Source of the DNA: Podarcis bocagei
Taxonomy: Eukaryota
Assembly: GCA_964188305.1 (NCBI GenBank)
Contig: OZ076885.1
Strand: one strand, 5' to 3'
Length of the DNA: 64,000 nt
Both the position numbers and the translations under genes were made by a program. Below are positions 11,577 to 43,500 of the stretch, in pieces. The notes beneath the pieces are model-generated. The model was not told the origin of the DNA. It saw only the letters and a list, made by a program, of their open reading frames with translations, and made no database searches. The stretch's first letter is position 1; every line of letters starts with the position of its first letter.

Positions 11577-14500
11577 CTGTGAAATATAAGAACAATAAAG
11601 GAAAAGGGTGTTATCTATCCCTAGAAAACATTCCTGATGTCCTAGCAGTAGATAAAAACATAAGAATATAAGGTAAAAAGCTCTGCTGGAGCAGACCAAA
11701 GCTTTATCTTTCTAGTCCTGTGGTCAACCAGTGGCTTATGTCCTGCCCACAAGCTGGACAGATGAGGTCATGTGCACAATGTCTTGGTGATGATTTTATG
11801 TTCCTATGTGTTCATCAGAAGTGGGTTTTTTTTAAAAAAATAAAGTTGTCAAAGCGATAGCTTGCTCTGCAGGATCTAACAGCTGAAGCATTTGTAAAGG
11901 CTGTGTTGAACTTACTCGCTCACAATCAGCTCACACAGAGGAGATGGAGTGGTGCAGGGTGTTGGTGCTGGTGTTGTCGTTCTTGGCTCATGCGGTGTTG
12001 TTGTTGGAGGTGATGTTGTTGGCACTCCATAGCAATGGGGCTTGTTTTTATCGTAGGTCTTCCAGTAGCTGGCCATTTCTGAGCAAGAGGAAGCTTCATG
12101 GCCGTTGGGGAGGCGGCAGTCATCTGTCTTGTCATTTGAACATACTCCTAGGAGGGAGAAAGGGTCGCATTGTAAGTGTGCTGAATATGCAGTATACATT
12201 AGTGTCACTCTGAATGACATTGAAATAACAAAGCGGACTTCCTAATTGAAAAAGCCATTGTTGCTATCATAAAGTGTACCTTATATGCATATTCTGTTTC
12301 CTACTCTTCAGTATGGATATATTAGTCAAACCCAGGCTTCCTCAACCTCAGCTCTCCAGATGTTTTGAGACTACAATTCCCATCACCCCGACCACTGGTC
12401 CTGCTAGCTAGGGATCATGGGAGTTGTAGGCCAAAAACATCTGGAGGGCCGAGGTTGAGGAAGCCTGGTCAAACCATAGGTCCACCAAGCCCAATTAGGT
12501 CTACTCTGATGGGCAGCAGTTCTTTCTTCATCCCAAGAACTTTCAGATGTAGATACCAGGAACTGGACCTGGGATGGTCTAACACCACACACATGTGTTT
12601 GGCCATGGAGCTGTGGCCCCTCCCCCCAATGGTTAATTTTTCTTTATTGCTTTTCTAATGCTCCACATCTTCCTATGTAAAGAAATTTGTTTTGAAGGAA
12701 TAACATTGTGAAAAAGGATTTGAATGGTTGGGGATGTTTTGATCCCTTTACTTACCACATTGCCCCTCTGTGTTATGCTGAAATAGGTCAAAGGGGAGTT
12801 TTACTGAGAAAGTGAGCCCGTTGAAAGATATAAAAGCTTGGAGTGCAGGGATTTCGACACTCATGACAGTTCCAGTACTGGTGACAGAAATACCATATTT
12901 GGTGAAATCTCCATTGACCGGCTCATGGTTGAAAAAAATCTGAAACAGCAGCACAAAAGAGGCAAAAGAATATAAATCTGGAGGATTCAGAGTCTTCCAG
13001 AGCACTTGAGGGCAATCAGTCCTGGCCATGCTGATATTTCCTAGCTGCCTGTTTTTATACTACTTTTAATACTGCAATGATTATTTTACTGTGTTATTGT
13101 ATTTAATTAAAAACAGTAAGCCATAGTTTTTAACTGAAAACATACAGACACATGTATATATATGTGTGTGTGTGCGTGTATGTCATTGATTCTATAACCA
13201 TTAACTGGAAGTAAAGTGCATTAAACTCAGTGGGGGCTTTCTTCTGAGTAGTCATTATAGAGATGCACAGTTTGAGGAATAGCATCTCAATCCTAAACAT
13301 AATCTACATCATGGGATTAAGTAGCATTCCTCAAACAGGCACTTTGCCATGATTGTTATGTAAATTTTACAACCCATTAGCTGGTTTATAAATGTCATTT
13401 TGACATTTTTGTTTTGGTAAAAAATTATTATTGTAGGAAGCTGACACAGTTTGAGAAATCTGTGGCACACAGTACCTTGTTAATTCTCACTCCTTCATGC
13501 ACTTCACTGCTTAGCACAACTTCCATTGAGTTGTAATTTACAATGATGGCTCTGGAACAGGGCTGATTGTTAGTGACATCACAGAAATAATTGTCAAGCA
13601 AAACACTGAGGTTTCCATGTATATTCACAATCTCTTTCACCAAGATGTAAGTGCAGTTGTCATAGAAAGTGTAATTAGTGCCATCAAATGTCAGATAGTT
13701 AGCATCCCAACCAGTGCAAATACCTGTAACAGAAATCAAAAGATCAAATAAGGTTCACCTGGAGTGTAGTCTTGAGCAAACCAGAGTAACCAAGGTAAAT
13801 ATACACTGTGAAATCATTGGTTATTATGCTGTTGCTTGTATTAACTTTGATGGGCTAGGTCCTAGTTTGGTACACCAATTAGAAAGTGGGAATAATAAGA
13901 GAATTCTAGGAGAGCAATGTTGATGGTGCAGATTTTGTGGTGAAACAACTGCCATAGCCAGAGTCCTGATGACTAGTGACAGCCAGGGCAGGAATTGGTT
14001 GAACCACAGCATTTTCTCCCTTACTCCTTTCCATTGAAATATGAAAAGCCACCGGTTGACTTTTTTAGGAGTATGCTAGAGAAACAAGAGGTTTAGGCTT
14101 CTGCAAATCCATAGCCTTCCCTGAAAGACCCTCAAAAGTCTCACCTCCCTCAATAAATGGAATTGCAACTGCATGACATTACACCCCCTGAGCTTTGTAC
14201 GATACAATCCTGTAAGTTAAATATCTTAATCTCTCATTCCATATCATAAAGATATATGTACTTTTTCTGAATGCTCAGTTATACTTACATTCACATTCAT
14301 AGCGTTCGACACAGCCATCCTTATCTACTATTTTTATCGGTGGGAGTCCACTCACACATACTGTCTTCTCTACAGGTGGTTGCGGCTTCAGAACTATTTT
14401 GCTGTTTCCTTCACAAGTTGCCACAGTGCAGTTGTTAAATATCCAAGTTTCATTGGTCTAGAGGGAAACCAGAGAAAAAATATTCTACAAGTGTCATACT

Positions 14501-17500
14501 CTTAGAAAGACACCATCTCCACTACCAAGGGTTCTTGTCCTACTGGAAGAGGAAAACCCATCTGGAGGCAAAATGGGGTGTTAGGGGGAGAGGCTGTTTC
14601 TCAATGGTAGAGCACATGGTGTGCATGCAAAAGGTCCCATGTTTAATCCTTAGCAACTCTAGATAGCCCCAGGGAAGACTCCTATATGAAACCCTGAGGA
14701 GTCATTAGCAGTCAACAAGGACAAGAGTGAGATAAATAGACCCATAGTCTGCCTTGGTATAAGCCAGCTTGCTATGTTTTAGAAAAGTGAGGCAAACAAG
14801 AACATTTGGAATGGACTTGAGATTTCTCCATATATGACTGTGTGGCAGGGGTAGGCAACCTGTAGCCTACCCAAAGTTGTTGAATTCCAGTTCCCACCAG
14901 TTCCAACCACCAGTGGTCAGGGATAATGAGACTTTGAATCCAGTAACATCAAGATCCCCATCCATTTTCAGTGAGAACAATAGCACAAATAAGATCTATA
15001 ACAAGAGAGTTGATTGTGACCAAGTGCATGTTCACATGACAGCTCCTCATACCTCCCAAAACAGTGGTGCTCATACAGCATGAATTGTGGGCAAAAGTCC
15101 CTGGGGTAGTCAGGATTTTCTTTTCAACATAGACACCTCGTTCACCAAGAGAGGATTCATTTGATGGTTTTTAAGAGGGGTGAAAATGGAGTGAGAGAGG
15201 CATTTGGTAGCCAACAGCTTTCCCCAACATGGAGCCCTTTTGATGTTTAGGGCTACAGCCTCTCATCAGCTAGCAAAAGCTATCCCCAATGTATGTATGA
15301 AAACAATGATAATTACCTTTCTTGGTGGATCAATATTAGGGCAACCTGTTACAGGAGTTGTGGGGGTTGATACAGCTGCAGTAGTGTATACTCTGGTTGA
15401 TGGAACAACAGTAGTGGGTGACGGAGAAGGCTGGGTTCCTGCAGTTGTAACTGATGGTGTTGATGGGTGGGAAGGAGTTGTTGAAGGACATGGTCCCTGG
15501 AACACCTCAATTTCACAGCTTCTGTTGCAAACTGCATAAAAACTGCATCCGGAACTATCAGTTCTATTGTATATTACTTCCCCTATTTTAAAAAAGGAGG
15601 GAATTTATCATAAAGCACCATGTACGAAAATTATAAAACAAAACATGTCATAACGTTCTAAAATGCAAATAAAGTTCAGATGAATTTGTCTACTGACATG
15701 CAGTGCAACTCTCAGCAGCAAGTCTGAGAAAGCATGCATTGGATTGTGTAATTTGTAGTGGGCAAGCTCCAACCCCACACCACCATGGGAGATCAGCAAG
15801 AGGTTCAGCCGAGGCTTGTGACTCACAATCCTAGGGAGTAAAAGGACATGTTGGCCACCTGTTAAAAGTAATGGCTGGCAGATAGTAGTAGATGTACATG
15901 AATATGAGTCAGTTGTAAAAGGGGATAGGGGATAGGTGAGAGATGGATCTATTGACATCTCTGTGGTTCAATACTGTTCAAAGAATGTATGGCATGAGAG
16001 AATTACAGAATTCATCTCAGCTAATACTTTTGTTCCCTAGGTTGTTAAAACATATAAAGCAGTGTAGAGTAAAACACAGATACATAAATTCAGTAAAGCA
16101 TTGAAAATATCAGCCCCAAACTTGCAAAAAACAAACAAAAAACCCAGATAAAGCAGGATTAATAAAATGATTTAAATGTAAATGTAAAAAGTAAGTAAAA
16201 AGGTTTCTACTCCTCCTCAAACTATACAGCAGAGCACCAAAGTAGACTCCCCTGTGGAGAGTGGTGCACAATCATGATGTAGGTATAAGGAAGGACGTAT
16301 GCTGAGCATATGTACAATCAAAGCAATATGTGAACGAAAACATTGCTTCAGCTGCTTTTCAAATTCATTAAGAGAAACTCACCAGGAGAAAACAAGCCCT
16401 TACTAAATCCGGGTACACGGCAGAAACATGGAGTTGTTCTGCTCAAAGTGACTGTTGTAGTTCCTGTTGTAGAAGGTATGGAAGTACTTGTTGCTGCTGA
16501 AGACACAATAGAAAAGAAATAAATGTATAACAGTTGTTACGTACTGCTTGAAGACATACTGCTGGAAATGGATGCTAAACACTGTAGATACTTAAGACTT
16601 CAGTGTACACTTCCAAAGCACCAACTGAAGCATAACAATTCAGAATTCCAACTGAGCTCAACCGGACTTACATGTATCTTTAGGGCTGGAGAATTTAACT
16701 TGATAATTGTACTACAAAAACCAGTTTAATGGATCAGATCAATACTTTGCTTACTTGATGTTCTTATTATACACCTACCATACTATCAAGAAACAGGGGA
16801 ATCCAGCTATATTCCTCCCAGTATCAAGAAACACACCCCTCCAGTCCAAAGGTGCTGTTAATAAAATTCCAAATATCTAGCCAGAGAGCTATCTACTACT
16901 TGTAATAGCATTGAAAACTTCTTTGAAAAATGCACACTGAGATCTAGGCAAACATTTTTGATAAGTTGCTAGCTGATAGACGCTAAGTTTCATAATTGGG
17001 ATACCAATTTTTGAAAAGGGTGGTATATGAAATAAGATCACCAAGCCCCCATTAATATGAAACAATTTGCTAACATTTGGCATTACACCTGTAATTGAGT
17101 AACATGTAATAAATTTAACTGTTGGAATATTTACCAAAGGTAACAAGATTTTCATACCAGGATATGCAGATTCATTCTGTAATTACCTGTTGTAACAACG
17201 ACCAAAGGCTTAGTGGAAAATGGCACTCTGGTAGGGACAGTTGCTGTTTCTACAGTAATCCCAGTAGTGGATATCGTCGACACAGGTTTGGAAACATGGG
17301 TAGATGGAAGAGATGTGGTTGAAACGGTGGAAGCCACTCCAGAAGTGATGGAAGGTGTGCTGACGGAGCCAGGGGTTGAGAAAGGGATGGTGGTCATGGG
17401 CTTTCCTGTTGTAATTCCAGGAGTGGTGGAAACAAGGGTGGTGCTTTGGGTGGTAGTGACTACAATGGGAGGTCGTGAAGAAGCTGTGTAGGATGCTGGA

Positions 17501-20500
17501 GTTGTGCTCTTGCCAGCAGTGCTGCCTGGTGTTTCTGTGGTTGTTGGCTTTCCTGTGGTTACTCCTGGAGTTGTAGAAACAAGAGTGGAGCGTTGGGTGG
17601 TGGTAAATACAATGGGAGGTGGCGTAGAAACCGTGGAGGATGCTGGAGTTGTGCTTTTGCCTGCCGTGCTGCCAGGTTTTTCTGTGGTAGAAGCAGCAGG
17701 TGTGCTTAGTGGTGTTGTGCTAGGATGGCAGGGCTTGTATTCACAGCACTGGTATCTAACCTGGAAGTTATAACACATCTTGTCTGTTTGCTTTGAATTT
17801 TCGCACAAAAGTCCAACATGGAGGTTACATTGCACTTCCTGACCAAGCAGATACAGGCTGACATCAGGGTGATTCTCAGCTCTGCATTCAATGTCTTGTG
17901 GATGTTTGCAAATATTTCCTCCAGCTTTTCGGATGGTCTCAAAATTCTCTATATCGCCATCATCTGGACTGCTGGTAGGACGGTGCAAATCATACCAGGA
18001 GGTCCAGTTACACTTTGGGAGGCACACAGTAGAGGTACTTTCTAGCGTAGTGGTAACAAGGGGAGCCAGGGTGGTTGTTGTGGTCAGCAGGCCTGGAGGG
18101 GTTTGTTCAGTGGTCCCGGTGGTGGGTATTGATGAGGAAGACTTGGAAACAGGAGTGGACTGGAGTGTTGTGGCTGTCACAGTGGGGACCACTCCAGTGG
18201 AGACAGCAGCAGTGCTGACTGAGCCTGGTGTTGTGAAAGGAAGGGTGGAAAGCGGCGTTGAGTGGGTGGTGGTGGTTGGCTTTCTTGTTGTAACTCCTGG
18301 AGTTGTCGGAACAAGGGTGGTGCTTTCGGTGGTGGTGAATACAACGGGAGGTGGCGTAGAGCCCGTGGAGGATGCTGGAGCCGTGCTCTTGCCTGCCGTG
18401 CTGCCTGGTGTTTCTGTGGTTGTTGGCTTTCCTGTGGTTACTCCTGGTGTTGTGGAAACAAGGGTGGTGCTTTCGGTGGTGGTATGGACAACAGGAGGTG
18501 GCGTAGAGCCCGTGGAGGATGCTGGAACCGTGCTCTTGCCCACCGTGCTACCTGGGGCTTCTGTGGTGGTGGCACTTGTTGTGACTAGTGGCGCTGGCGT
18601 GGTTTCACAGTGCTTGTAGTCGCAACACAGTGCTCTCATCTCATAGTCGTAACACATCTTGTACTTCCCTGTCTGTTTGGCATTCTCACAAAGGAGTCCA
18701 GTGTTGATATCGCAGATCATGTTCTGTCCAAGTTCAGATGCGCTGAGCTCTGGGTAGTCCACTCCTCTGCACTCCACCTTTTGAGGGTGCTCGCAGATGG
18801 TACCGCCCGATGCCTGGATGCTCTTAATGTCCTCACGATCGCCATCCCCAGGGTCGGAGCTTGGAGTGTGAAAACTGAACCAAGAGGTCCACTGGCACTT
18901 GGGTTGGCAACCGGTAGTGGTGCTTCCTGGCGTAGTGGTAACAAGGGGAGCCAGGGTGGTTGTTGTGGTCAGCAGGCCTGGAGGGGTTTGTTCAGTGGTC
19001 CCGGTGGTGGGTATTGTTGAGGAAGGCTTGGAAACAGGAGTGGACTGGAGTGTTGTGGCTGTCACAGTGGGGACCACTCCAGTGGAGACGGCAGCAGTGC
19101 TGACTGAGCCTGGTGTTGTGAGAGGGAGGGTGGAAAGCGGCGTTGAGTGGGTGGTGGTGGTTGGCTTTCTTGTTGTAACTCCTGGAGTTGTCGGAACAAG
19201 GGTGGTGCTTTCGGTGGTGGTGAATACAACGGGAGGTGGCGTAGAGCCCGTGGAGGATGCTGGAGCCGTGCTCTTGCCTGCCGTGCTGCCTGGTGTTTCT
19301 GTGGTGGTTGGCTTTCCTGTGGTTACTCCTGGTGTTGTGGAAACAAGGGTGGTGCTTTCGGTGGTGGTATGGACAACAGGAGGTGGCGTAGAGCCCGTGG
19401 AGGATGCTGGAGCCGTGCTCTTGCCCACCGTGCTACCTGGGGCTTCTGTGGTGGTGGCACTTGTTGTGACCAGTGGCGCTGGCGTGGTTTCACAGTGCTT
19501 GTAGTCGCAACACAGTGCTCTCATCTCATAGTCGTAACACATCTTGTACTTCCCTGTCTGTTTGGCATTCTCACAAAGGAGTCCAGTGTTGATATCGCAG
19601 ATCATGTTCTGTCCAAGTTCAGATGCGCTGAGCTCTGGGTAGTCCACTCCTCTGCACTCCACCTTTTGAGGGTGCTCGCAGATGGTACCGCCCGATGCCT
19701 GGATGCTCTTAATGTCCTCGCGATCGCCATCCCCAGGGTCAGAGCTTGGAGTGTGAAAACTGAACCAAGAGGTCCACTGGCATTTGGGTTGGCAACCGGT
19801 AGTGGTGCTTCCTGGCGTAGTGGTAACAAGGGGAGCCAGGGTGGTTGTTGTGGTCAGCAGGCCTGGAGGGGTTTGTTCAGTGGTCCCGGTGGTGGGTATT
19901 GTTGAGGAAGGCTTGGAAACAGGAGTGGACTGGAGTGTTGTGGCTGTCACAGTGGGGACCACTCCAGTGGAGACGGCAGCAGTGCTGACTGAGCCTGGTG
20001 TTGTGAGAGGGAGGGTGGAAAGCGGCGTTGAGTGGGTGGTGGTGGTTGGCTTTCTTGTTGTAACTCCTGGAGTTGTCGGAACAAGGGTGGTGCTTTCGGT
20101 GGTGGTGAATACAACGGGAGGTGGCGTAGAGCCCGTGGAGGATGCTGGAGCCGTGCTCTTGCCTGCCGTGCTGCCTGGTGTTTCTGTGGTGGTTGGCTTT
20201 CCTGTGGTTACTCCTGGTGTTGTGGAAACAAGGGTGGTGCTTTCGGTGGTGGTATGGACAACAGGAGGTGGCGTAGAGCCCGTGGAGGATGCTGGAGCCG
20301 TGCTCTTGCCCACCGTGCTACCTGGGGCTTCTGTGGTGGTGGCACTTGTTGTGACCAGTGGCGCTGGCGTGGTTTCACAGTGCTTGTAGTCGCAACACAG
20401 TGCTCTCATCTCATAGTCGTAACACATCTTGTACTTCCCTGTCTGTTTGGCATTCTCACAAAGGAGTCCAGTGTTGATATCGCAGATCATGTTCTGTCCA

Positions 20501-23500
20501 AGTTCAGATGCGCTGAGCTCTGGGTAGTCCACTCCTCTGCACTCCACCTTTTGAGGGTGCTCGCAGATGGTACCGCCCGATGCCTGGATGCTCTTAATGT
20601 CCTCACGATCGCCATCCCCAGGGTCGGAGCTTGGAGTGTGAAAACTGAACCAAGAGGTCCACTGGCATTTGGGTTGGCAACCGGTAGTGGTGCTTCCTGG
20701 CGTAGTGGTAACAAGGGGAGCCAGGGTGGTTGTTGTGGTCAGCAGGCCTGGAGGGGTTTGTTCAGTGGTCCCGGTGGTGGGTATTGTTGAGGAAGGCTTG
20801 GAAACAGGAGTGGACTGGAGTGTTGTGGCTGTCACAGTGGGGACCACTCCAGTGGAGACGGCAGCAGTGCTGACTGAGCCTGGTGTTGTGAGAGCGAGGG
20901 TGGAAAGCGGCGTTGAGTGGGTGGTGGTGGTTGGCTTTCTTGTTGTAACTCCTGGAGTTGTCGGAACAAGGGTGGTGCTTTCGGTGGTGGTGAATACAAC
21001 AGGAGGTGGCGTAGAGCCCGTGGAGGATGCTGGAGCCGTGCTCTTGCCTGCCGTGCTGCCTGGTGTTTCTGTGGTGGTTGGCTTTCCTGTGGTTACTCCT
21101 GGTGTTGTGGAAACAAGGGTGGTGCTTTCGGTGGTGGTATGGACAACAGGAGGTGGCGTAGAGCCCGTGGAGGATGCTGGAGCCGTGCTCTTGCCCACCG
21201 TGCTACCTGGGGCTTCTGTGGTGGTGGCACTTGTTGTGACCAGTGGCGCTGGCGTGGTTTCACAGTGCTTGTAGTCGCAACACAGTGCTCTCATCTCATA
21301 GTCGTAACACATCTTGTACTTCCCTGTCTGTTTGGCATTCTCACAAAGGAGTCCAGTGTTGATATCGCAGATCATGTTCTGTCCAAGTTCAGATGCGCTG
21401 AGCTCTGGGTAGTCCACTCCTCTGCACTCCACCTTTTGAGGGTGCTCGCAGATGGTACCGCCCGATGCCTGGATGCTCTTAATGTCCTCGCGATCGCCAT
21501 CCCCAGGGTCGGAGCTTGGAGTGTGAAAACTGAACCAAGAGGTCCACTGGCATTTGGGTTGGCAACCGGTAGTGGTGCTTCCTGGCGTAGTGGTAACAAG
21601 GGAAGCCAGGGTGGTTGTTGTGGTCAGCAGGCCTGGAGGGGTTTGTTCAGTGGTCCCGGTGGTGGGTATTGTTGAGGAAGGCTTGGAAACAGGAGTGGAC
21701 TGGAGTGTTGTGGCTGTCACAGTGGGGACCACTCCAGTGGAGACGGCAGCAGTGCTGACTGAGCCTGGTGTTGTGAGAGGGAGGGTGGAAAGCGGCGTTG
21801 AGTGGGTAGTGGTGGTTGGCTTTCTTGTTGTAACTCCTGGAGTTGTCGGAACAAGGGTGGTGCTTTCGGTGGTGGTGAATACAACGGGAGGTGGCGTAGA
21901 GCCCGTGGAGGATGCTGGAGCCGTGCTCTTGCCTGCCGTGCTGCCTGGTGTTTCTGTGGTGGTTGGCTTTCCTGTGGTTACTCCTGGTGTTGTGGAAACA
22001 AGGGTGGTGCTTTCGGTGGTGGTATGGACAACAGGAGGTGGCGTAGAGCCCGTGGAGGATGCTGGAGCCGTGCTCTTGCCCACCGTGCTACCTGGGGCTT
22101 CTGTGGTGGTGGCACTTGTTGTGACCAGTGGCGCTGGCGTGGTTTCACAGTGCTTGTAGTCGCAACACAGTGCTCTCATCTCATAGTCGTAACACATCTT
22201 GTACTTCCCTGTCTGTTTGGCATTCTCACAAAGGAGTCCAGTGTTGATATCGCAGATCATGTTCTGTCCAAGTTCAGATGCGCTGAGCTCTGGGTAGTCC
22301 ACTCCTCTGCACTCCACCTTTTGAGGGTGCTCGCAGATGGTACCGCCCGATGCCTGGATGCTCTTAATGTCCTCACGATCGCCATCCCCAGGGTCGGAGC
22401 TTGGAGTGTGAAAACTGAACCAAGAGGTCCACTGGCATTTGGGTTGGCAACCGGTAGTGGTGCTTCCTGGCGTAGTGGTAACAAGGGGAGCCAGGGTGGT
22501 TGTTGTGGTCAGCAGGCCTGGAGGGGTTTGTTCAGTGGTCCCGGTGGTGGGTATTGTTGAGGAAGGCTTGGAAACAGGAGTGGACTGGAGTGTTGTGGCT
22601 GTCACAGTGGGGACCACTCCAGTGGAGACGGCAGCAGTGCTGACTGAGCCTGGTGTTGTGAGAGGGAGGGTGGAAAGCGGCGTTGAGTGGGTGGTGGTGG
22701 TTGGCTTTCTTGTTGTAACTCCTGGAGTTGTCGGAACAAGGGTGGTGCTTTCGGTGGTGGTGAATACAACGGGAGGTGGCGTAGAGCCCGTGGAGGATGC
22801 TGGAGCCGTGCTCTTGCCTGCCGTGCTGCCTGGTGTTTCTGTGGTGGTTGGCTTTCCTGTGGTTACTCCTGGTGTTGTGGAAACAAGGGTGGTGCTTTCG
22901 GTGGTGGTATGGACAACAGGAGGTGGCGTAGAGCCCGTGGAGGATGCTGGAGCCGTGCTCTTGCCCACCGTGCTACCTGGGGCTTCTGTGGTGGTGGCAC
23001 TTGTTGTGACCAGTGGCGCTGGCGTGGTTTCACAGTGCTTGTAGTCGCAACACAGTGCTCTCATCTCATAGTCGTAACACATCTTGTACTTCCCTGTCTG
23101 TTTGGCATTCTCACAAAGGAGTCCAGTGTTGATATCGCAGATCATGTTCTGTCCAAGTTCAGATGCGCTGAGCTCTGGGTAGTCCACTCCTCTGCACTCC
23201 ACCTTTTGAGGGTGCTCGCAGATGGTACCGCCCGATGCCTGGATGCTCTTAATGTCCTCACGATCGCCATCCCCAGGGTCGGAGCTTGGAGTGTGAAAAC
23301 TGAACCAAGAGGTCCACTGGCATTTGGGTTGGCAACCGGTAGTGGTGCTTCCTGGCGTAGTGGTAACAAGGGGAGCCAGGGTGGTTGTTGTGGTCAGCAG
23401 GCCTGGAGGGGTTTGTTCAGTGGTCCCGGTGGTGGGTATTGTTGAGGAAGGCTTGGAAACAGGAGTGGACTGGAGTGTTGTGGCTGTCACAGTGGGGACC

Positions 23501-26500
23501 ACTCCAGTGGAGACGGCAGGAGTGCTGACTGAGCCTGGTGTTGTGAGAGGGAGGGTGGAAAGCGGCGTTGAGTGGGTGGTGGTGGTTGGCTTTCTTGTTG
23601 TAACTCCTGGAGTTGTCGGAACAAGGGTGGTGCTTTCGGTGGTGGTGAATACAACGGGAGGTGGCGTAGAGCCCGTGGAGGATGCTGGAGCCGTGCTCTT
23701 GCCCACCGTGCTACCTGGGGCTTCTGTGGTGGTGGCACTTGTTGTGACCAGTGGCGCTGGCGTGGTTTCACAGTGCTTGTAGTCGCAACACAGTGCTCTC
23801 ATCTCATAGTCGTAACACATCTTGTACTTCCCTGTCTGTTTGGCATTCTCACAAAGGAGTCCAGTGTTGATATCGCAGATCATGTTCTGTCCAAGTTCAG
23901 ATGCGCTGAGCTCTGGGTAGTCCACTCCTCTGCACTCCACCTTTTGAGGGTGCTCGCAGATGGTACCGCCCGATGCCTGGATGCTCTTAATGTCCTCACG
24001 ATCGCCATCCCCAGGGTCGGAGCTTGGAGTGTGAAAACTGAACCAAGAGGTCCACTGGCATTTGGGTTGGCAACCGGTAGTGGTGCTTCCTGGCGTAGTG
24101 GTAACAAGGGGAGCCAGGGTGGTTGTTGTGGTCAGCAGGCCTGGAGGGGTTTGTTCAGTGGTCCCGGTGGTGGGTATTGTTGAGGAAGGCTTGGAAACAG
24201 GAGTGGACTGGAGTGTTGTGGCTGTCACAGTGGGGACCACTCCAGTGGAGACGGCAGCAGTGCTGACTGAGCCTGGTGTTGTGAGAGGGAGGGTGGAAAG
24301 CGGCGTTGAGTGGGTGGTGGTGGTTGGCTTTCTTGTTGTAACTCCTGGAGTTGTCGGAACAAGGGTGGTGCTTTCGGTGGTGGTGAATACAACGGGAGGT
24401 GGCGTAGAGCCCGTGGAGGATGCTGGAGCCGTGCTCTTGCCCACCGTGCTACCTGGGGCTTCTGTGGTGGTGGCACTTGTTGTGACCAGTGGCGCTGGCG
24501 TGGTTTCACAGTGCTTGTAGTCGCAACACAGTGCTCTCATCTCATAGTCGTAACACATCTTGTACTTCCCTGTCTGTTTGGCATTCTCACAAAGGAGTCC
24601 AGTGTTGATATCGCAGATCATGTTCTGTCCAAGTTCAGATGCGCTGAGCTCTGGGTAGTCCACTCCCCTGCACTCCACCTTTTGAGGGTGCTCGCAGATG
24701 GTACCGCCCGATGCCTGGATGCTCTTAATGTCCTCGCGATCGCCATCCCCAGGGTCAGAGCTTGGAGTGTGAAAACTGAACCAAGATGTCCACTGGCATT
24801 TGGGTTGGCAACCGGTAGTGGTGCTTCCTGGCGTAGTGGTAACAAGGGGAGCCAGGGTGGTTGTTGTGGTCAGCAGGCCTGGAGGGGTTTGTTCAGTGGT
24901 CCCGGTGGTGGGTATTGTTGAGGAAGGCTTGGAAACAGGAGTGGACTGGAGTGTTGTGGCTGTCACAGTGGGGACCACTCCAGTGGAGACGGCAGCAGTG
25001 CTGACTGAGCCTGGTGTTGTGAGAGGGAGGGTGGAAAGCGGCGTTGAGTGGGTGGTGGTGGTTGGCTTTCTTGTTGTAACTCCTGGAGTTGTCGGAACAA
25101 GGGTGGTGCTTTCGGTGGTGGTGAATACAACAGGAGGTGGCGTAGAGCCCGTGGAGGATGCTGGAGCCGTGCTCTTGCCTGCCGTGCTGCCTGGTGTTTT
25201 TGTGGTTGTTGGCTTTCCTGTGGTTACTCCTGGTGTTGTGGAAACAAGGGTGGTGCTTTCGGTGGTGGTATGGACAACAGGAGGTGGCGTAGAGCCCGTG
25301 GAGGATGCTGGAGCCGTGCTCTTGCCCACCGTGCTACCTGGGGCTTCTGTGGTGGTGGCACTTGTTGTGACCAGTGGCGCTGGCGTGGTTTCACAGTGCT
25401 TGTAGTCGCAACACAGTGCTCTCATCTCATAGTCGTAACATATCTTGTACTTCCCTGTCTGTTTGGCATTCTCACAAAGGAGTCCAGTGTTGATATCGCA
25501 GATCATGTTCTGTCCAAGTTCAGATGCGCTGAGCTCTGGGTAGTCCACTCCTCTGCACTCCACCTTTTGAGGGTGCTCGCAGATGGTACCGCCCGATGCC
25601 TGGATGCTCTTAATGTCCTCGTGATCGCCATCTCCAGGGTCGGAGCTTGGAGTGTGAAAACTGAACCAAGAGGTCCACTGGCATTTGGGTTGGCAACCGG
25701 TAGTGGTGCTTCCTGCCGTAGTGGTAACAAGGGGTGTCAGGGTGGTTGTTATGCCACCTGTCACTTTAGATGTAGTTCTGGATCCTGCTGTTGTTATTTC
25801 TGGTGTTGCTGGAGTTGTTGATGCACCACATGGTGTGTATAGGCAGCATAGGAACCTGATTTCAAAATTCAGGCAGATTGGTGGTGTCTGATCCTTATTG
25901 TTGCATATCAAACCGTTAGACTTGGAACATTGTACTTTTTGTCCGAGGGTTTCTATGCTTTCATTAGGAAAGCGCTGAGCTCTGCATTCCACTTCATCTG
26001 GCATTTTACATACTTTGTTTCCTCTATCTCTTATTTTCTCTGGTGTTTCATAATCCCCATTGTCTTGTCCAAATTTAGGGTAGCTGACATCATACCATTC
26101 TGTCCATTCACATGTTCTATGGACACATACTGTTGTTTGCGCTGTAGTGGATTCTGTAAGAAACAACACCACTGGTTATTTTAATCCGGTTTATTTAGAT
26201 TATAAATCTCCCTATCTGTTATCTGCCTCCTCTCTCCTTCTCCCATGTAACCTCTCTCCCAAGTTTTTTCTGTAGATGAGGCAGGGATTGGGGGGCGGGG
26301 GGAACCAGAAGAGCACATTGGTGGAAGTGGATCATTCCATCTGGGGAGCTGCCATGCTTGAGCCGATTGAACCTTCAACTTAACTTTATGTTGATTTCCA
26401 TCTTGTATATTTTTATTTTAAAATAATATATGCAACATGTAACAAAAAATATGAATATGGTATATTTGGGGATGTTTTCCTATATTATAGAAGATTTGTA

Positions 26501-28799
26501 AAGTTTTTCATTATCTCTTCATTTTCTTACATACTTTGTTTATAAATGCTTGCTTTTGATCATGTCGCATTTACATCTAGTTTGGTTGAGATAATTGGTA
26601 AAGAATTATGTTATGGAGCTGGCTCAAATACCTAAGTAGCGCTAAGGAGATTGCTCCATTAGTACAAGCCCTGTTGCACTAGTGGGACTCATTTGTGCTG
26701 GCTCTATTAACAGAAGTATTTAGTTGAATTTGTCCCTTTGTGTGGTGTTGTATGGCACCTCTGATTTTAACAGCTGACCCAAGATGTGGTGCTATTTGTG
26801 CTACTACTGCAGTGGTAGGAGCTGCTTCTCTGCTCTTTGGTGTGGTGCAGTGCATGTCTACTCAGAAGTATTATTCACTGTGTTCAATGGAACTTCTCTC
26901 AGCGAAGTTTGGAAAGAGTTGAAGCAAAAGATTTGGACTGAAATACCTGCTTCACTTGGTGTTGTAGTTGAAACTGTAGGTGGTACTGTGGTAGTCCCAC
27001 CACATCTGAATAGTTCTCTGTGGATTGTTCCATTGACATCACACGTTGCAATCATGCACCAGCCCAAGCCATCTGTGGTGTTGTAGATGACATCCTTGTA
27101 GATATATGTCTTTCCTTCATAATAGCAGTAGCATGCTGAAAATTGACAGAGTAAGAATGGTCAGGTAACATCATATGAAATATGATATAAGGTGCCATTC
27201 ATAACTCACTACATACAGCTTACCTTTGGCATCATAGTTACACTCTATGCCTTTACTGGTGCATGTACTGTAAAAAAATGATAGGAAAATGTGAGACCCA
27301 GGAATCATAAAACTGCATTCTGCTGTTTATTTTCTACTTAGTTTGGTCTGGAAGTTAATTTCATAGTTTTTCCCCTGCCTCCTTAAGCATTCATTTACCG
27401 TACTACTTCTTGTCTGTGATTTCATCTACCACATTCACACTGAATTGCAAATAGGAACATTCTAATAATTTTCTTGTTCTGGTTTTTGGGATTTATTGTG
27501 TATGTAAAATCCAATTTAAAATATTACTTCAATCAATTAGATTCTCAGCATACTTCATTCTAATGGTATATTATGAGTATATGATAAAGGATGCAATCAG
27601 AGCAACAAGATTCATTCTAGAATCAACAAGAATAACATCTCAAGGGGTATACAGAGAGTACAGTAGTACCACCGGTTGCGAACGGGATCCATTCTGGAGG
27701 TCCAGCCGGATCTCAAGGTTTTCGCTACCCAATGAAAAGGTTTGTCGCTTTCACAACCTGAAGTTTACGTTACCGAGAGTAACGTAACTGGAGGTGCTAC
27801 TGTAATTGATCATTTCTCTTAGTGTTGTCAAGCTATACATACTTACCATGCCTGACATGTCTTTCTTGAGTCAAATGTTTTTCCTAGTGGATGATAGTTA
27901 CCCTGATCATCATAACAGCCACACACATCAACACACGTCATCTCATCCTCATTGAAATAAGGCCTGTCTGCTGGACAGTGTGGGTAGCAGCCTGAGACAA
28001 AGGAAGGTGTGAGGGAGATAAGAGCAATATATAAAATCTGTCAAAAAGCAATTCCATTTAATTTACTTTTTTTTTTTGGGGGGGGGTATTTTAATTAATA
28101 TTTGTCATTGGTCCAGTGCTGGGATCTTTCCACCAATAGCTTTTCCACATGCTTCCAAGTTTCCATGAAAGGAAAAAGGTTGTGGTCATTTGCAGGTGTG
28201 TCGAATGAGCCCTTGATCACATCTAGGCTGGCTCTTAGAATTTAAGCCTGACTGCAAGCCATTTGAAACCCAAAAAGATGAGAACACAAGGTGACCTATT
28301 TTCTATTGGTTTAGACAACCAACAACACTCCCCCAAACTTGAAACCTATTAAATGTTGTGCATAGCTGGCTTAATGACCCTATAAGTCACTAGAAGTCTT
28401 CTTACCTTCCAAGCCAGGCAACTGATAATGGCATCTCCCGCTTGGGTTTCTGCATGTCTTCATGCATGGGGCTCCACAAGGCTTGTAGTGCCATTCACAT
28501 TCACGTTCATCATTGTAATAATCACAGAACATTGCTAAGGGGAACCGAAAGAAAAAGGTTGAGGACCAGACATTCCACCATGGATCTGTATTGCTGTCAA
28601 TGCCATTAAAATAATGGTGGGCACCATGACAAAGTATGCTCATGAGGCCAATACCTAAACTGATAAGAAGGTGGGAAGCAAAGGCATGAAGAAAGCACTG
28701 AAAATGAATGTAGTTATTTCTATTTACTGCAACATAGTTATATCAATAATCCTACATTAGGCAGTTGCTGATTCATTGAAAGTATTCACAGTACTGTAC

Positions 28800-28840
<41 letters not shown>

Positions 28841-31800
28841 CCAGACATTTTCTTCAGTGTGCTGTTTATTGTCATATATATCTAATGGAAAAATTATCTT
28901 GAAGCTAATATCTCATTTCCCCTTCACCCTCCTCCCACTTCCAGTATACATTCAAGTGTGGTCCAATACTCACGACAGAATGATGGTGTTCTCCATGATA
29001 TGCACACTCCAAATTCACTACATGCTTGAGCATACGCAGCTACAGCTGTACAGAAGCATTCACAATCTCCCCCCGTGTCACAAGCGCAGGAATCAGTTAC
29101 ACAAGCTTCATAATATCTCGTTGGCTCAACCTGTTAAAACATTGAAGCATCAGCTATGGGTCCTGCTGACATTTCCTAAGTTTGTTCCACGGGCAATAGT
29201 GTGTTTGAGAAGTTGTTGGTAATATCCCCACCCCCTGGGTTTGCAATTGCTTTCATAGATTGTTGGCTAGTGTGCAAAAGATCCAAAGGGCCAAACTAAA
29301 TATGAGGTCTGAATGCATCTTTGCATTTAATGTGTAAACAGTAATTATCAGCCCCTCCACCACACCAGCTGATTCTATTTACAGTGGTACCTCGGGTTAA
29401 GTACTTAATTCATTCTGGAGATCCGTTCTTAACCTGAAACTGTTCTTAACCTGAAGCACCACTTTAGCTAATGGGGCCTCCTGCTGCCGCCATGCCGCCG
29501 GAGCCCGATTTCTGGTCTTATCCTGAAGCAAAGTTCTTAACTTGAAGCACTATTTCTGGGTTAGCGGAGTGTGTAACCTGAAGCGTATGTAACCCGAGGT
29601 ACCACTGTACATTAAATATTTGCATACAGTGTAACAAAAACAAAAACATAAGGAACGTAAGAAATTCAAAGTCAGCGAGAAGTTCACATCTAAAATGTCT
29701 ATCCATGAAAAGTGTCCTTTCAGGGAGTGCTAGTTGCATTTTAAAAAATACCCCCAAAACCTTAAGGTGCAATGGGAAGGCACATTTAACATCCTTTCAC
29801 ACTTTGCTCTAAGTGGTGAAGATAGAGGCTCTGATCCAGAGTGTTCATACAGAAGACTGTACAGCGACTGGTGTGCTCATGCAACTTGCTGAAGAATATG
29901 AGCACTGCTCATTCAGGCAGCGTGGATCACCTCTTGGAGAGAGGAGGGGAGGGGAAGGGGTATCCAGACTGACTCCCATACCCACTCTTTCCCTCCAAAA
30001 GACTGCACAGACCTGGAACTGCCCTCCCATTATCTTTTTGCATTGGCACAAATACAGGCCTGTAAGCAAAATTCTATTTATGCACACGTATCTTGCCTGC
30101 TGTATTGGGGTGGTAAAAGTTCCATAGTTGAATATTCACATCAAGAATTGATTAGCAAAAGAAGGCAATAAATTGGGGAGAAGAGTCGGTGGAAGAAGAT
30201 TGGAAGAAATTTAAATACTATTTACAGAAATATTGCAAAATTAATGAATGTTAGAATGATGTCAGAATGAAGTTAAGTGGTTTAAGCAGCAATGTTTTAA
30301 AGGTGTATGAAAAATGGATTAATAACAGGTGAGAACTTAAAGTTATATTAAGTTAAAGGATTAAGATAAAAATAAAGAGGGAAAGAAACTGCTGAATTAA
30401 CTAACTGAACTGGAATACAAAAAAGGGAGGTGTGAGGAGGTCAGGGAAGTAAGGATATGAATATATGATATGGAAAGATTGATTTTTTTTTCTTTTTTAA
30501 ATGTTTTTTATCTTTTTCTGTATTTTTTATTTTTCTTTTTTTCCTTTTTTATTTCTATTGTTGTCTTTTTGTCTAATTTTTTTACTTATGTAACTTTTTT
30601 CCTTTGAAAACTTAATAAATATCATTTTTTTTTAAAAAAAGAAGGCAATAAATTGGGTCGTAACAATCAGTTAGGGACTTCCCTTTAAAACAGGAAGAAA
30701 AGATATCAGCATAAGCTAATTTTCTGAATGGTCTGTCTTGACTTAGCCTGAATTCTTCTTATTAGTATTTTTCTAAATGGCTTCTTCACAATCCAAAACA
30801 TTAGAAACAGGATCTAGTGATAAACATTTACACTGAACACACTCCAAAATCTAGAATATGACAGCAGTGGGACACATAGTAGAGGGTTGTTAAAGGCACT
30901 ACTTAAAGGTGCTGCTAGACAGTCTTCAGAGTTGGTGACATCCTGTAGGGTGTTACGTGCCTTCTGTAATGGACTGTTGAAATCCATGAAACCACCACAT
31001 GTATAATTATAGACTTGTAATTGCTCAGGAATTGTGGTGAACACCTGAAAAATTCTAGACTTCAAGATAGTTCTGCCGCAAGGTATACCTGAGAGTGGCA
31101 GGCAGCAAAGGCCTTGCTGTTGATGATGCTGCATTGCTTCTGTGCCCAGGACTTTCTGTAAGGGTTCTTGAAGCAAGGATCCTTTGTGCATTTGGCTTCA
31201 GGACATGTGGGAGACACCTTCCAACTATTACCAAACTCCAGCACATCACTTACTACAGACTGACTCCGGGTAGTGAAGTCATTCATTCCATTGCCATCAT
31301 AGTTTCCACATAAACCACAGACCTGACCCTGCACAAAGAAGCAATGAAAACACTTGAGTTACAGATAAATTGCATGAACCTCTTAGTCCAACTTAATTTT
31401 TGATTTTCTCCCATTTGGTTAATTAACACGCTGCCATCTCTTATTATAGGAAACTATCATTATTTGTTGCATTTAGAAAACACAAGCCATGTGTGCCTAG
31501 AGGTAAGAGATTTGTTTTTTCTTTCCTTCCTATGAAGATTATTTTGCATTTGTTCAAAAATACAAACAAAAGAAAGAATTTTATATTGTGTTCGATTTCT
31601 CAGTTATTGTTAATCTACAAGTTATTGTCTATTCATAACTTCATAACTTCTCCATCTTATTGCCATATGCTGATCAAAAGGGCAGCAGACATATATTGAA
31701 AATATACTGCATTGGTATAAAATTCATTGAAATGTTCAAACATTGCTCATATTTTGAAATGATAACAGAACTATTATATTTGGTCTCCTTATCAAAACAT

Positions 31801-34800: not shown

Positions 34801-37561
34801 TGTATATCTGCCAACCTGTTATTCAACCTAATAATTATTTCTATTTTTTGTGTTGGTTATTTTAGGAACATATAAGATGATGGTAACAAGAGGCATTTTC
34901 TTTAAGAAGTCCTTACCAGGTGTTACAGTTGACTTTAATCTTCTCTCCTGGCTGATATGTGGCATCATTGTGAATGCATGGACACTCTTCCATAGCGATG
35001 CAGCCCCCTTTACCATCTGACACCAGCCCAGCAGGGCACATGCAGCCAGAGACACACTGTGTGCTATACTGTAAAAGCCAAGAAAGCATTACTTCAGAAG
35101 AGAGAATAATGCTGATAACAATTGAATTAGTCCACTAAAACAGGACTGGATCAAAAGACTGTAGGCTGTGGGAATTCAAGTGGGTGAAAGCCTATGCTTG
35201 TTAAATTGTGAACTGACACCTGATTCAGCAGCTCTTGTGCATACCCAGGAGCCCCAATTTGCAAGGTGGTCTCCAGTGTAAACATTAAGGTTTGAATGAG
35301 CAGTGGCTGGTCCACTTAACTTTGATGCTGGTACATGTGAAAACTGTTCCTTCCCTGACACTAAAGTGAATGGAAGATCCCATGCTTATCCCCTGCTTTT
35401 TTTGTAAACCACTTGTAGGTGGGTGTGGGTGTATTTAATTTAGTGGTATGTATATTTAATGAAATAAGTAAGAAATTATGCAAAGTTCCAATATATGCAT
35501 TATAACCCTGCAGCTCAGGGATGGGGAATGTTTTCAGTCTGAGGTCCACCTTTCTTGTTGACAACCTTCCAGGATTTTCATGCCAGTGGTAGGTTGGGTC
35601 AGAGGTAAATGTGAGTGGAGCAACAGATGTAACCCTAACCTTATGTACAGTAGTCTACATTCTGATCATGCAAAAGGCAGAGGTTCACACACTTCTCCAT
35701 CTTCCATCCTGCATCCAGACAAGCAATAGGCATTTGTCACAGTTCAAAACACATTCCAAACAGGCAAAAGCACTTGAGGACACGAAGCAGGACCAGGGAT
35801 GGGAATGGGCTGAAAAGAGGCCTGAGGATACGGAGGCTGGGAGGGCTCTGTTCAGCTAACATCCTGAGATCCCTCACCCACTACTCTAGATGGGGAGGAG
35901 GGTGAGGACAGGAGAGTGCCTTGTCTAAGGTCAGATAATAAGTTTGTGACAAAAGCAAAGGACATTCTGATTGATAGCACAGTCTCTTAAAATATCATCC
36001 GGTCCTGCATACTTACACAGTGCATATCAAGAGTCTGACAGCTTTTCTGGCATTCAGCTCCAGTTTGGCCTGCAGTGGCATTTCTGCAGTTAAAGTAGAC
36101 CATGGGGGCAACGCAGACTAGCAGGGCAAAAGGAGAGAAAATGTGTAAGAGATGAAAGGACAGGCATGGGTACCACAGAACAGGAAGACCTCAAACAAAC
36201 CTTTTGAACAGAAGTCTACTATGGTTTGTGGAACTATTATATAATTAACTATGAAGCCCATATTAACTTGAAACTTTTAATGAATATGGTTTTCCAGTGA
36301 ATATTTAATAATTGTGCCCAGTTGTCAATTTGTAGCCATCTACAATATAAAAGGCTTTTAACAAAATAAGGAACGCAGCCCAATTGTCTGCAACTTTCCA
36401 AGATGGAAAGTAAGAATATATATCATATTTTACATATATAGGTATATTCTCCTTACCCTGTTTTGTGTCCCCATCACCAATGCAGTTCAACTTTCCTTGG
36501 CTGCATGTGCTATGTAAAAGAAAGAGGAATTAGGTTTGCTTTTGCATTCACTTTCTGGTTGTGCTTAAAACTTGGAGCCTTCAAGTTGTGAGTCTGTAGT
36601 TGTGCCCTAGACAGAGTAGAGCAGTTGGGTTTACTCCAGAAATACCGGTGATTTAGGGATATTTAGAATCTAAAATTGAATCCCCGCAGCGGGGTGCGCT
36701 CCTGTTGTTCGGTCCCAGCGCCTGCCAACCTAGCAGTTCGAAAGCACCCCTGGGTGCAAGTAGATAAATAGGGACCGCTTACCAGCGGGAAGGTAAACGG
36801 CGTTCCGTGTGCTGCGCTGGCTCGCCAGATGCAGCTTGTCACGCTGGCCACGTGACCCGGAAGTGTCTGCGGACAGCGCTGGCTCCCGGCCTATAGAGTG
36901 AGATGAGCGCACAACCCTAGAGTCTGTCAAGACTGGCCCGTACGGGCAGGGGTACCTTTACCTTTACCTTTTTTAGAATCTGAAAATGGGACCATACAGG
37001 TCACTAATTTGGATGTTTTTCCAAATTCTGTTGCTCTTTATGTATTTAGGCATTTTGGTCTATTTACTTATAAGATATGGAGGGGAAATTAGTTAGGTAG
37101 CGATAAAAGAATCTGGGACAAAATGCAAGCATTCCAGATACCGGCACTACTTAGTCATGTATTCTGATAATGCTAGAAGAGCTTTGCCATGAGTTGTAGT
37201 CCCTAACATTTGGAGGGCACCAGGTTGGTGAAGGCTGTACTAAAAAGTTAAAGGCAGCAGCTTGAATCCTCTTACCACAAAACACCAACGTCATGGAGCA
37301 CTTCACCGGAGAGTATTGACGTTCCTTTGTAATAGCATGGGCATTTGTTAGCAGGTACACATTTTCCATAATCATCCATGTAGGTTCCACTTTCACAGGT
37401 GCATCCATCAACTGGGACAAATTTGACATTGCAGGTAACATCAGGTTCACTCAGAGATCGGCAGGTAGGTTGACAAGAACTGATGGAATAGCTGTAATTC
37501 AGGGATTTGGGGCATGAAGTGGTGTATCTGGCTGGAAAGAGAAAAACAAACAGCTTGATTA

Positions 37562-40500: not shown

Positions 40501-43500
40501 CACCCTCTCCAGTTGTTGATTTCTGCTTTTCTCTGTGAAATGACATATCTTGCCTCATCCCTGAAACATGTGATGGTATGGCTTGGATCCTATACTGATG
40601 ACACCTTCCATTTAGTTCCACCCATTTGGTCTTGTCCCACCATTATGTTTCCTTATAGATTAGTGGTAACCAACATGGTGCCCTCCAGACGTTTATGACT
40701 ACAATTCCCACCAGTCCCAGCTAGCATGGCCAATTGTCATGGGCAGTGGGAGTTGCAGTCCAAAATATCTGTAGGACATCAGGTTGCCTACCCCAACCAA
40801 AGATACTTTTCAACTTCCTCCAATAAACTGTTTTCAATGAGAGGTAACAGATCGCTTCATACCGTATGATAAGAAGCTGGATTAACTGAGGCATGGCATT
40901 TAGCAAAAGGTCCTTCCGAGTCAGTCAGCAATCCACACCAATGTCGGGCGTATTTTTCTACAAAGAGAAGAAATTAATCCATATCGTTTTGGGAATTTCT
41001 ATAGGTGCAAATGGCAGCTTTTACCTCAACTCACATCACTGACTCTAGACAGGATATCATGGTGCTGCTACAATGCTTGTTCTACTCACTGCTGTTCACT
41101 CATTGCTGAACCTCCTGAAGCCATGGACTGAGGAAGGAAATGATCTAAATCTTGAATATGTGCATGCTACAGATACCCAATATACCCAATTATGCATAGG
41201 GCTGTTAGTTTATAGACTACTTGCAAAACTTACAAGCCACAGTCTAAAAAAGAGGTAGCCATGTGTACATCCACTTACCGTATTTCAATGGGGGGTGGCA
41301 TACCTAACTTCCTCTGTTTAGATTGTGGCTACAGGATCTTGATTTGCAAGGTTTTATTGTTATTTATTTCCCCTGATTTCCCCATTTATTAATATTTGTT
41401 TTCAGTCAGTTCTTCTAATTTGTTTATTTCTATTAATTTCCCCCACAAGCTAGGTAGAATTATAATTTTGAAGTGTTGGTGAGTCTTGCTTATAATTCTC
41501 AAATATGCCTACCATTTTCAATGCTAAGCGTGCAAGGGTCCTCAAAACTTTGTTTGATGTTGGGACATGCAGCCTGAGTTTTCCAGGTGTTAGCAAATGC
41601 AGATGCTGTTCCTTCCACCACTCCACTTATGGCTGTGAAGTCATCCATCTGGCGCTTGTCAAAGTTTCCACAGAGACCTTTGAAAGAAACCCCAAAGAGT
41701 TTTATAGTCCAGTTTTATAATACTTTGCCCCCCAGGCATACCACAAATTTCTTTTTGCTTTAAAATTCTTCTTACCACAAGTCCTTCCTTTGAAAGATGG
41801 ATCCACATGAATATACAATTGCATTGTGGGTACGAGCTGGATTACTAGCTGAAGGCCAAGGTTTGTATGCACAATGATGAAGAAGGACGAAGGTCTGAAT
41901 ATGGTTACATTAGCTATGGACAAAGAAGACACCATTCTTATGAGATTCAGAGCTGCAACTGCCATCCATTACTCAGGAAAAGAAGAACCAGATTTGTGAA
42001 GGCCAATTCATGCAAGCCAAGCACATTGGCATGTTGTGACTGTGGGCTGGATGGATGTGTGAAGGGTTTGATACAAGTTGAAACAGTTATATGTTTACTT
42101 TCAGATTGTGCCCAACCATCAGCCCAATCTACATTGGCCACCATATCATCGTTTGCCCCAGTTTTGTTGATGATTAAGTGGTATGAACTGAAACAATAAT
42201 GTGGCATATATGGCATGGATCTAACAAATCGTAACCATCAAAGGATTGGGGGAATATGATAGAATAGTCTGGCACCAAAATGATAACAACGATGGCACCA
42301 GACATCTTGTAGAAGGCAGTCCCATAAATGGGGTGCAAAAAAGGGCTTATTTCTGGCAGCCAACTCCTTAATCTCTGGACACCAGGTGAAAGACCTTTCA
42401 CAAAATATATCTCAGCTAATAAGTAGTTTCCTATAGGAGGTGGATGTCCTTCACATACTCTGGTCTCAGCTACAGAGGTAGCTTAGGACCTTGTAGTAAA
42501 CAGCAGCAGTTTATATTCTCATTATGGAGAGTCCTGGTTAACAAACTTGCTATCTAATCTGGAAGTTCCTTTCAAAGGTTGCCTTACATACAATGCATTA
42601 TATTATAGTAGCTGTTATTAAAACATGGCTGATGGTAAGAGAATCCTTCATTTCCAGGGGAAACCTCTACATTAGTTGTGGAGAACATTTGGTCTTCCAA
42701 GTGTTGCTGAACTACAACTACAACTCTGCTATTGGCCATGCTTCTTGGGGCTGATGGGAGTAGTGGTCTAGCAACATTCAGAGGGCCACAGGTTCCTCAC
42801 ATCTGCTCTACACAAACCCAACTTTCTTTTCCCAGCAGAACTGGAAAAGGGAAAATAACCCAATCAAACCCTGCTAGCTTGTGGAGTAACAAGCCCTTCT
42901 GCTGAGCTTGCCCCTAAGATTTCAAAACTTTTAAGGCTGCCATGGCAAACAGAAGTTTCTGACATGCAACATACCTGCTGAGAGAGGCAACTGAGTGTAG
43001 AGCGAGTTGACTAATACACCACCATTAGGACTGATCACAATGGTCTGGTGACAAAGAGAAAAGGTGTAATAATGAGTTTGGTGATAAATTACATCTTCTG
43101 TTTCTTCTAATAAGCTTTATTGGGGGGGGGAATAAAAACTATTACATGCAGGTCCTGCTATCAGATAAGTGAAATTAGGGAGTGTTCAGCATTAATATAA
43201 CCAATCTTGAATGGTTTATTTTGAGGNNNNNNNNNNNNNNNNNNNNNNNNNNNNNNNNNNNNNNNNNNNNNNNNNNNNNNNNNNNNNNNNNNNNNNNNNN
43301 NNNNNNNNNNNNNNNNNNNNNNNNNNNNNNNNNNNNNNNNNNNNNNNNNNNNNNNNNNNNNNNNNNNNNNNNNNNNNNNNNNNNNNNNNNNNNNNNNNNN
43401 NNNNNNNNNNNNNNNNNNNNNNNNNNNNNNNNNNNNNNNNNNNNNNNNNNNNNNNNNNNNNNNNNNNNNNNNNNNNNNNNNNNNNNNNNNNNNNNNNNNN

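Follow-up and report, generated by a model that had tools for sequence, protein, structure and literature searches.

A homogenized array of CysD-PTS modules in the central exon of a gel-forming mucin gene of Podarcis bocagei

MUC5-type mucins combine cysteine-rich domains (CysD) with stretches in which proline, threonine and serine abound (PTS). A described system of this design is human MUC5B, whose 10.7-kb central exon was reported to contain a super-repeat of Cys domain and PTS sequence (Desseyn et al. 1997, J Biol Chem 272:3168, as cited in PMC11344006; exon layout in PMC9712336). The copy number of the Cys domain varies among human and ape haplotypes (PMC11344006), and human MUC2, MUC5B and MUC5AC carry 2, 7 and 9 CysD, respectively (PMC11912381). 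Alternating CysD and PTS domains were also noted earlier in MUC5-type mucins of chicken and reptiles (PMC1552070, PMC4948705). Here, a 64,000-nt stretch of DNA from the lizard Podarcis bocagei (GenBank assembly GCA_964188305.1, contig OZ076885.1; hereafter the window) was analyzed, in which a preliminary description made from the letters alone had pointed to a CysD-dense exon of a mucin gene. The human CysD counts quoted in that description agree with the published ones given above. The analysis reported below concerns this exon, the gene around it and the counterparts of both in other sauropsids.

The window ORF (open reading frame) list contains a frame of 3,006 aa at 17152-26172 on the minus strand. 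Within it, the central PTS/CysD exon was assigned to 17187-26153 on the same strand (8,967 nt, 2,989 codons), based on the open frame, the splice sites and 11 Mucin2_WxxW stretches. The acceptor (CAG/AATCC, with a polypyrimidine tract) before 26153 and the donor (ACAG/GTAATT) after 17187 are both canonical and stand exactly at the exon ends that had been proposed in the preliminary description, which named no strand. The GC content of the exon region is 0.55-0.57, compared with about 0.40 in the surroundings. The PTS part of the exon totals 1,872 residues, including 897 Ser+Thr and no Cys, and the spacers consist of about 36% Thr and 12% Ser (48% Thr+Ser) with 14% Pro.

A Pfam scan for Mucin2_WxxW (PF13330), which had been proposed as a check, detected 11 CysDs in the open frame (E value 1.9e-262, 849 bits; gathering cutoff 22.4). 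CysD1 to CysD6 are located at residues 16-115, 160-260, 455-555, 701-801, 947-1047 and 1242-1342 of the frame, and CysD7 to CysD11 at residues 1537-1637, 1832-1932, 2127-2227, 2422-2522 and 2717-2815. All 11 domains are 99-101 aa long and contain 10 Cys and one WxxW motif (WTEW or WTSW). The comparison with solved structures gave matches to the CysDs of MUC5AC (8ov0, 1.8e-25), MUC5B (8oer, 3.2e-22) and MUC2 (6tm6, 2.9e-18), and the cysteines of the window CysD align to those in the solved MUC5AC and MUC5B domains. Five intradomain disulfides are accordingly predicted for each CysD from this correspondence.

The PTS linkers that follow the CysDs are, in order, 44, 194, 145, 145 and six times 194 aa long, with a tail of about 180 aa, and the mean CysD spacing is 270 aa. 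At the protein level CysD3 to CysD10 are identical and CysD2 differs at two residues. At the DNA level the array consists of nine units, U2 to U10, seven of them 885 nt (295 aa) and two, U3 and U4, 738 nt long because one PTS sub-repeat of 147 nt (49 aa) is absent (a gap at alignment columns 370-516). U2 to U9 differ pairwise by 0-9 mismatches over 885 nt, with U5 and U8 exactly identical, and U10 shows 15-21 mismatches to the other units, mostly at its 3' end. The protein and DNA comparisons thus bear out the earlier claims of one unique 5' CysD, nine near-identical copies and one diverged 3' CysD, of about 45 aa of PTS after the first CysD and 145-195 aa within the array, and of the whole 295-aa CysD+PTS module as the repeating unit.

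Along the minus strand, the exon begins with the unique CysD1 (25828-26127) and the short 44-aa PTS1 (25696-25827). These are followed by U2, which comprises CysD2 and a 194-aa PTS and carries a few unit-specific variants (24811-25695), by U3 and U4, each with a CysD and a 145-aa PTS (23335-24810), by the five 885-nt units U5 to U9, which differ from one another by 0-5 mismatches (18910-23334), and by U10, whose 3' end starts to diverge (18025-18909). CysD11 (17728-18024) has only about 66% nucleotide identity to the units. The terminal PTS of about 180 aa (17187-17727) contains two diverged 147-nt sub-repeats at 17399-17688. CysD11 and this tail are an old diverged copy of the CysD+PTS module.

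The exon lies in an almost complete gel-forming mucin gene, which was mapped to 427-59160 on the minus strand by colinear tblastn of its Podarcis muralis orthologue and by exon domains. The best database match was this P. muralis 'mucin-5B-like' protein (P0001, 4,988 aa; 95% identity over the query part), followed by Zootoca vivipara 'mucin-5B-like' (P0002, 88%). Residues 1-4833 of P0001 match the window colinearly from about 59160 down to about 427, and the exons are mostly 90-100% identical. The signal-peptide exon is near 59160, the exons between 59160 and 26948 correspond to residues 1-1308, and the last ~155 aa of the orthologue, the C-terminal end, where a dimerizing cystine knot would be expected, map past the window start. 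Pfam detected VWD (54434-54721 and 31086-31331), C8 (49554-49787) and TIL (37278-37532) in exons before the central exon, and VWD (13470-13721) and C8 (10980-11156) of a fourth VWD-C8 unit after it. The window exons were searched singly and P0001 served as a proxy for the joined protein, in which Pfam found four VWD, four C8, TIL and 10 CysD, with VWC below threshold (23.0 bits; cutoff 27.6). The colinear exons and the VWD, C8 and TIL domains on both sides therefore identify nearly the whole of a MUC2/MUC5-type gel-forming mucin gene, with N-terminal VWD-C8-TIL, a single-exon PTS region with interspersed CysD, and VWD-C8 after the PTS.

The units were compared within and between species. Units of the same array are, at the median, 99.5% identical in the window, 99.3% in P. 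muralis and 100% in Zootoca; for units of different species the median is 97.3% between the window and P. muralis and about 90% between either of these and Zootoca. At four alignment columns every window unit has one state and every P. muralis unit another. The P. muralis and P. raffonei models lie at about the same distance from the window, with identities of about 97% for unit and head and about 93% for all flanking matches. In a tree of all CysDs of eight clade-A proteins (clade A is described below), CysD1 formed one clade across species that included other squamates and an owl (support 95/91), and the window CysD11 grouped with the last CysD of P. muralis and Zootoca (support 99). The internal CysDs clustered strictly by species or lineage. 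Since CysD1 grouped with the CysD1 of other species, it is orthologous and not homogenized.

This pattern is the typical mark of concerted evolution, from which the edge copies escape. In such a process, unequal crossing-over, gene conversion or both among in-frame units would homogenize the internal modules within each species, CysD1 and CysD11 at the edges would escape and stay orthologous between species, and the CysD copy number would drift, which fits the 10, 11 and 14 CysD of three close lacertids. The gain or loss of units would preserve the frame because the periods of 885, 738 and 147 nt are all multiples of 3. We put the probability at nearly 0.9 that the central region is a single large exon of a lacertid secreted polymer-forming mucin that is kept uniform by concerted evolution.

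The position of the gene among MUC5-type mucins was analyzed with trees of the N-terminal 1,300 residues. The orthologue of the window gene fell into a sauropsid clade A (support 100) that contains squamate '5B-like' proteins, a tuatara protein and some proteins of turtles, crocodilians and birds. The members of another sauropsid clade, B (support 100), are mostly named MUC5AC. The two clades formed a polytomy with mammalian MUC5AC and MUC5B in one tree and were weak sisters (support 81) in another. Database names are scattered over the clades: Colius 'mucin-5B' belongs to clade B, and '5AC-like' proteins of Tiliqua, Paroedura and Athene belong to clade A.

The distribution of CysD arrays was examined with a profile built from the window CysDs and applied to all retrieved proteins. 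Because the first protein set was biased to CysD-rich proteins and reached at most 5,260 aa, a second set was taken with the N-terminal 500 residues of P0001 (ranking by D1; proteins to about 8,700 aa). The same gene has 10 CysD at 295 aa in P. muralis, 14 in P. raffonei (P0131; spacings of 144, 295 five times, 246 and 295 aa six times) and 7 at 294 aa in Zootoca. The 295/246-aa module is common to the window and these three species, and the exact unit length of 295 aa was found in lacertids only, among the proteins examined. Among other clade-A proteins, regular arrays were found in Anolis sagrei (10 CysD, 266 aa), Gekko (15, 250 aa), Paroedura (13, 250 aa), Euleptes (15, 247 aa), Elgaria (15, 236 aa), Pogona (22, 223 aa) and Alligator mississippiensis ('mucin-5B', P0190; 24, 256 aa), and in Eublepharis (13, 248 aa), which is listed under clade A from outside the tree. 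Tiliqua has 15 CysD with mixed spacing (212 aa eight times and about 334 aa five times), Rhineura 13, also mixed (385 aa eight times and 246 aa three times), and Hemicordylus 12 at irregular distances of 273-541 aa.

In clade B, several turtles have 12-14 CysD at 221-232 aa and the snake Ahaetulla has 18 at 168 aa. Birds overall have 17-30 CysD at 174-185 aa. The clade-B birds are Numenius with 19, Anas with 23 and Colius with 23, all at about 180 aa, Gallus with 28 at 174 aa (MUC5AC, P0186) and Manacus with 30 at 182 aa (P0206); Cyrtonyx (24) and Phalacrocorax (26), both at about 180 aa, are listed under this clade from outside the tree. In most of the listed proteins, neighboring CysDs have a median identity of 0.95-1.0, and one salmonid and some frogs likewise have regular arrays of near-identical CysDs. 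Low counts were found in models from older short-read assemblies, for example 3-7 in Alligator sinensis, and in the clade-A models of snakes (Pantherophis 2, Crotalus 4, and Erythrolamprus 4 with a gap of 1,420 aa between two of them). In each of two clade-A proteins of turtles (P0214, P0216) a single CysD was detected. Collapsed assemblies or incomplete models may lie behind some of the low counts, and for the snake and turtle clade-A proteins the explanation could be either a true loss of the array from one paralogue or gene models that are incomplete.

The points that weigh against the reading of the region as a uniform mucin exon concern the copy number estimate, the expression and identity of the gene, and the behavior of its CysDs. 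Units that are 99-100% identical across 8 kb are hard to assemble, and the near-identical 885-nt units could have been inflated or collapsed, so that the true CysD count would not be 11. Public DNA runs were therefore searched with one unit and its unique flank (24811-28600), and the k-mer depth of each Logan contig was compared. In run X3 the flank contigs had a depth of 11-11.9 and the unit contigs of 109-141 (9.2-11.8-fold), and in run X1 the respective depths were 95-96 and 1,100-2,206 (11.5-23-fold); these ratios are rough and contig-derived, and a copy number from summed depth is unreliable. Both runs stand under one species label, that of the best-matching data, and may differ from the assembled individual. 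The majority unit contigs of X1 and X3 carry the U3-U10 consensus at 25621, 25622 and 25633, where U2 is unique. At 25441 (unit position 255), a G on the plus strand, present in no window unit, is fixed in X3 and found in some copies in X1; the samples are therefore from independent individuals, and internal variants differ between individuals. The X1 ratios exceed the nine assembled near-identical units and the counts of close relatives differ (10, 11, 14), which would fit a miscounted array. Against this, both independent samples gave unit contigs at no less than nine times the flank depth, the array is open for 9 kb, with variants specific to single units and a defined order that includes the two 738-nt units, and P. 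raffonei has a similar pattern. Inflation of the array by the assembly was not indicated, and an assembly artefact in the count, by inflation or collapse, is considered unlikely; some individuals may have more copies, or some collapse may have occurred in the assembly. That the array is a true whole-domain variable number tandem repeat between congeners (10, 11 and 14 CysD), perhaps also between individuals, given depth ratios of about 10-12-fold in one sample and 14-23-fold in the other, and that the homogenized, evenly spaced sauropsid arrays of 12-30 seen in gene models from long reads contrast with mammalian arrays, in which the CysDs are fewer and irregular and the PTS repeats short, is a tentative proposition to which we give slightly less than an even chance.

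Raw RNA reads on the unit numbered 12 in run X23 (labeled as a relative) and 0 in X24, so that RNA support is almost lacking in the two runs, and one of the tblastn matches in the C-terminal region, at 11915-12262, is interrupted by a stop, as would be seen if the region were a decaying or unexpressed pseudogene segment. Such a relic is nevertheless hardly credible: the 3,006-aa frame is open in repetitive DNA of 56% GC, the ten Cys are kept in 11 of 11 domains, the splice sites are canonical, the flanking exons are mostly 90-100% identical to the annotated orthologue, and the stop is probably intron read-through because it lies in a low-identity match that overlaps the query range of another. 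With regard to identity, sauropsid clades A and B are not paired one-to-one with mammalian 5AC and 5B in the N-terminal trees, and the window contains no neighboring gene for synteny with the mammalian MUC5AC-MUC5B-TOLLIP order. Nor was a neighbor gene present within 10 kb of the loci in Paroedura and Anolis, and tblastn with the termini of the paralogue gave no hits there. 'MUC5B' is therefore used here as a database label and not as demonstrated orthology. The self-association of MUC5AC and MUC5B CysDs is itself disputed, since Perez-Vilar reported monomers, according to the discussion in PMC3195396. A further alternative is that the exon represents a lacertid-specific adaptive architecture, an unusually CysD-dense and regularly spaced mucin giving a tighter gel than in other sauropsids; the confinement of the 295-aa unit to lacertids speaks for it, as does a CysD density about twice that of human MUC5B (7 CysD, PMC11912381). 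This is regarded as very improbable, because regular arrays occur in the same paralogue of geckos (13-15 CysD, 247-250 aa), Pogona (22) and Alligator (24) and in the other paralogue of turtles (12-14) and birds (17-30), and the window, with 11 CysD at a mean of 270 aa, lies at the sparse end for sauropsids. The comparison across squamates, birds and turtles that had been proposed as a check showed similar copy number and spacing to be widespread, the outcome that the preliminary description had itself named as refuting, and the earlier suggestion of a lineage-specific architecture was not borne out: both MUC5-type paralogues of sauropsids generally have regular CysD arrays, and these are often denser and longer. 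The architecture in the window is ordinary because lizards, crocodilians, turtles and birds all have it.

If the region is a uniform exon of a polymer-forming mucin, as preferred here, its product would be a block copolymer in which compact CysDs alternate with unstructured spacers of 145-194 aa. By homology to MUC2 CysD1, the fold of which binds two Ca2+ (PMC7599080), each CysD of about 100 aa would be a disulfide-locked beta-sandwich with two Ca2+ and an exposed WxxW ladder. The PTS spacers would be densely O-glycosylated, hold water and set the distance between the CysDs, which may serve as 'stickers' that hold weakly and reversibly, either from chain to chain or inside one chain. The covalent polymer would be made by end-to-end linkage through the N- and C-terminal VWD-C8-TIL assemblies. 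CysDs have been reported to form non-covalent dimers (PMC3195396), and when a recombinant protein of 12 CYS was added to mucus, its mesh size and permeability fell, as did the motility of bacteria and sperm (PMC6861317). What the sequences show is the anatomy of the exon, its place in the mucin family, the spread of such arrays among species and the mark of concerted evolution; for the lizard protein, glycosylation, CysD self-association and any rheological effect are inferred.

Several other features were observed in the window. A run of 358 N (43227-43584; assembly gap or mask) lies inside the gene just upstream of the exon corresponding to P0001 residues 476-505, and this exon may be partly masked by it, as its match is only 77% identical. 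The tblastn matches at 12727-12954 and 11915-12262 overlap on orthologue residues 4381-4524, and the second is the one that contains the in-frame stop mentioned above. This is probably due to intron read-through or to the P. muralis gene model being different here; an exon duplicated locally, or a defect, within the fourth VWD region (11915-12954) is conceivable. A (CA)19 microsatellite is present in an intron at 28802-28839. Upstream of the gene (59.2-64 kb) neither a mucin nor another recognizable gene was found, and the two longest ORFs there were negative in Pfam. A long homopolymer-like run at 61480-61560 translates to poly-Leu or poly-Ile ORFs. Two ORFs on opposite strands, of 184 aa (60108-60662, minus) and 77 aa (60613-60846, plus), have a common motif; Pfam gave no family, and they look like the tail of a CR1/L2-type ORF2 of a long interspersed nuclear element in inverted copies.

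The window itself is of limited significance because gene models of close relatives and work on human MUC5B already cover the gene, the family and the super-repeat. The array offers a clean case of concerted evolution acting on an entire protein-domain module, with a copy number that varies among close species. In the literature that could be searched, no paper dealt specifically with bird or reptile CysD arrays or with gel-forming mucins evolving in concert, and none with the contrast between sauropsids, with 12-30 homogenized modules, and mammals. This contrast is a modest comparative point and not a property of the window. Sauropsid mucins with 20-30 CysD are natural material for the published idea that the CysD number sets mucus stiffness and pore size. 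If the contrast is true and functionally relevant, CysD copy number could tune mucus mesh size across amniotes.

Among known systems, the 'mucin-5B-like' genes of P. muralis, P. raffonei and Zootoca are the same gene as that in the window, with flanking exons about 93% identical overall and many at 95-100%. In common with the window they have the 295- and 246-aa units, a unique CysD1 that a short PTS1 follows and a last CysD that has diverged, and they differ from it in CysD number (10, 14 and 7, compared with 11) and in a few species-wide fixed substitutions of the unit. Human MUC5B resembles the window in having one giant exon in which Cys domains alternate with PTS in a higher-order repeat with nearly identical internal CysDs. 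Its PTS, however, consists of short tandem repeats of 29 aa and a 147-aa tail, and its CysDs are fewer (7) and further apart, whereas the window PTS contains only the 49-aa sub-repeat in one or two copies and its CysDs are spaced at 246-295 aa. A further system, Oikosin 1 of Oikopleura (as described in PMC3195396), likewise is a secreted structural mucus protein with many tandem CysD (WxxW) repeats; by its description it is not a VWD-type polymeric mucin, and its CysDs are adjacent, without long PTS spacing. The MUC5-type mucins of birds, turtles and crocodilians have the same kind of evenly spaced CysD array, with domains that are 97-100% identical and PTS of fixed length, but their units are 174-256 aa long, the examples reach 23-30 copies, and most of those of birds belong to clade B.

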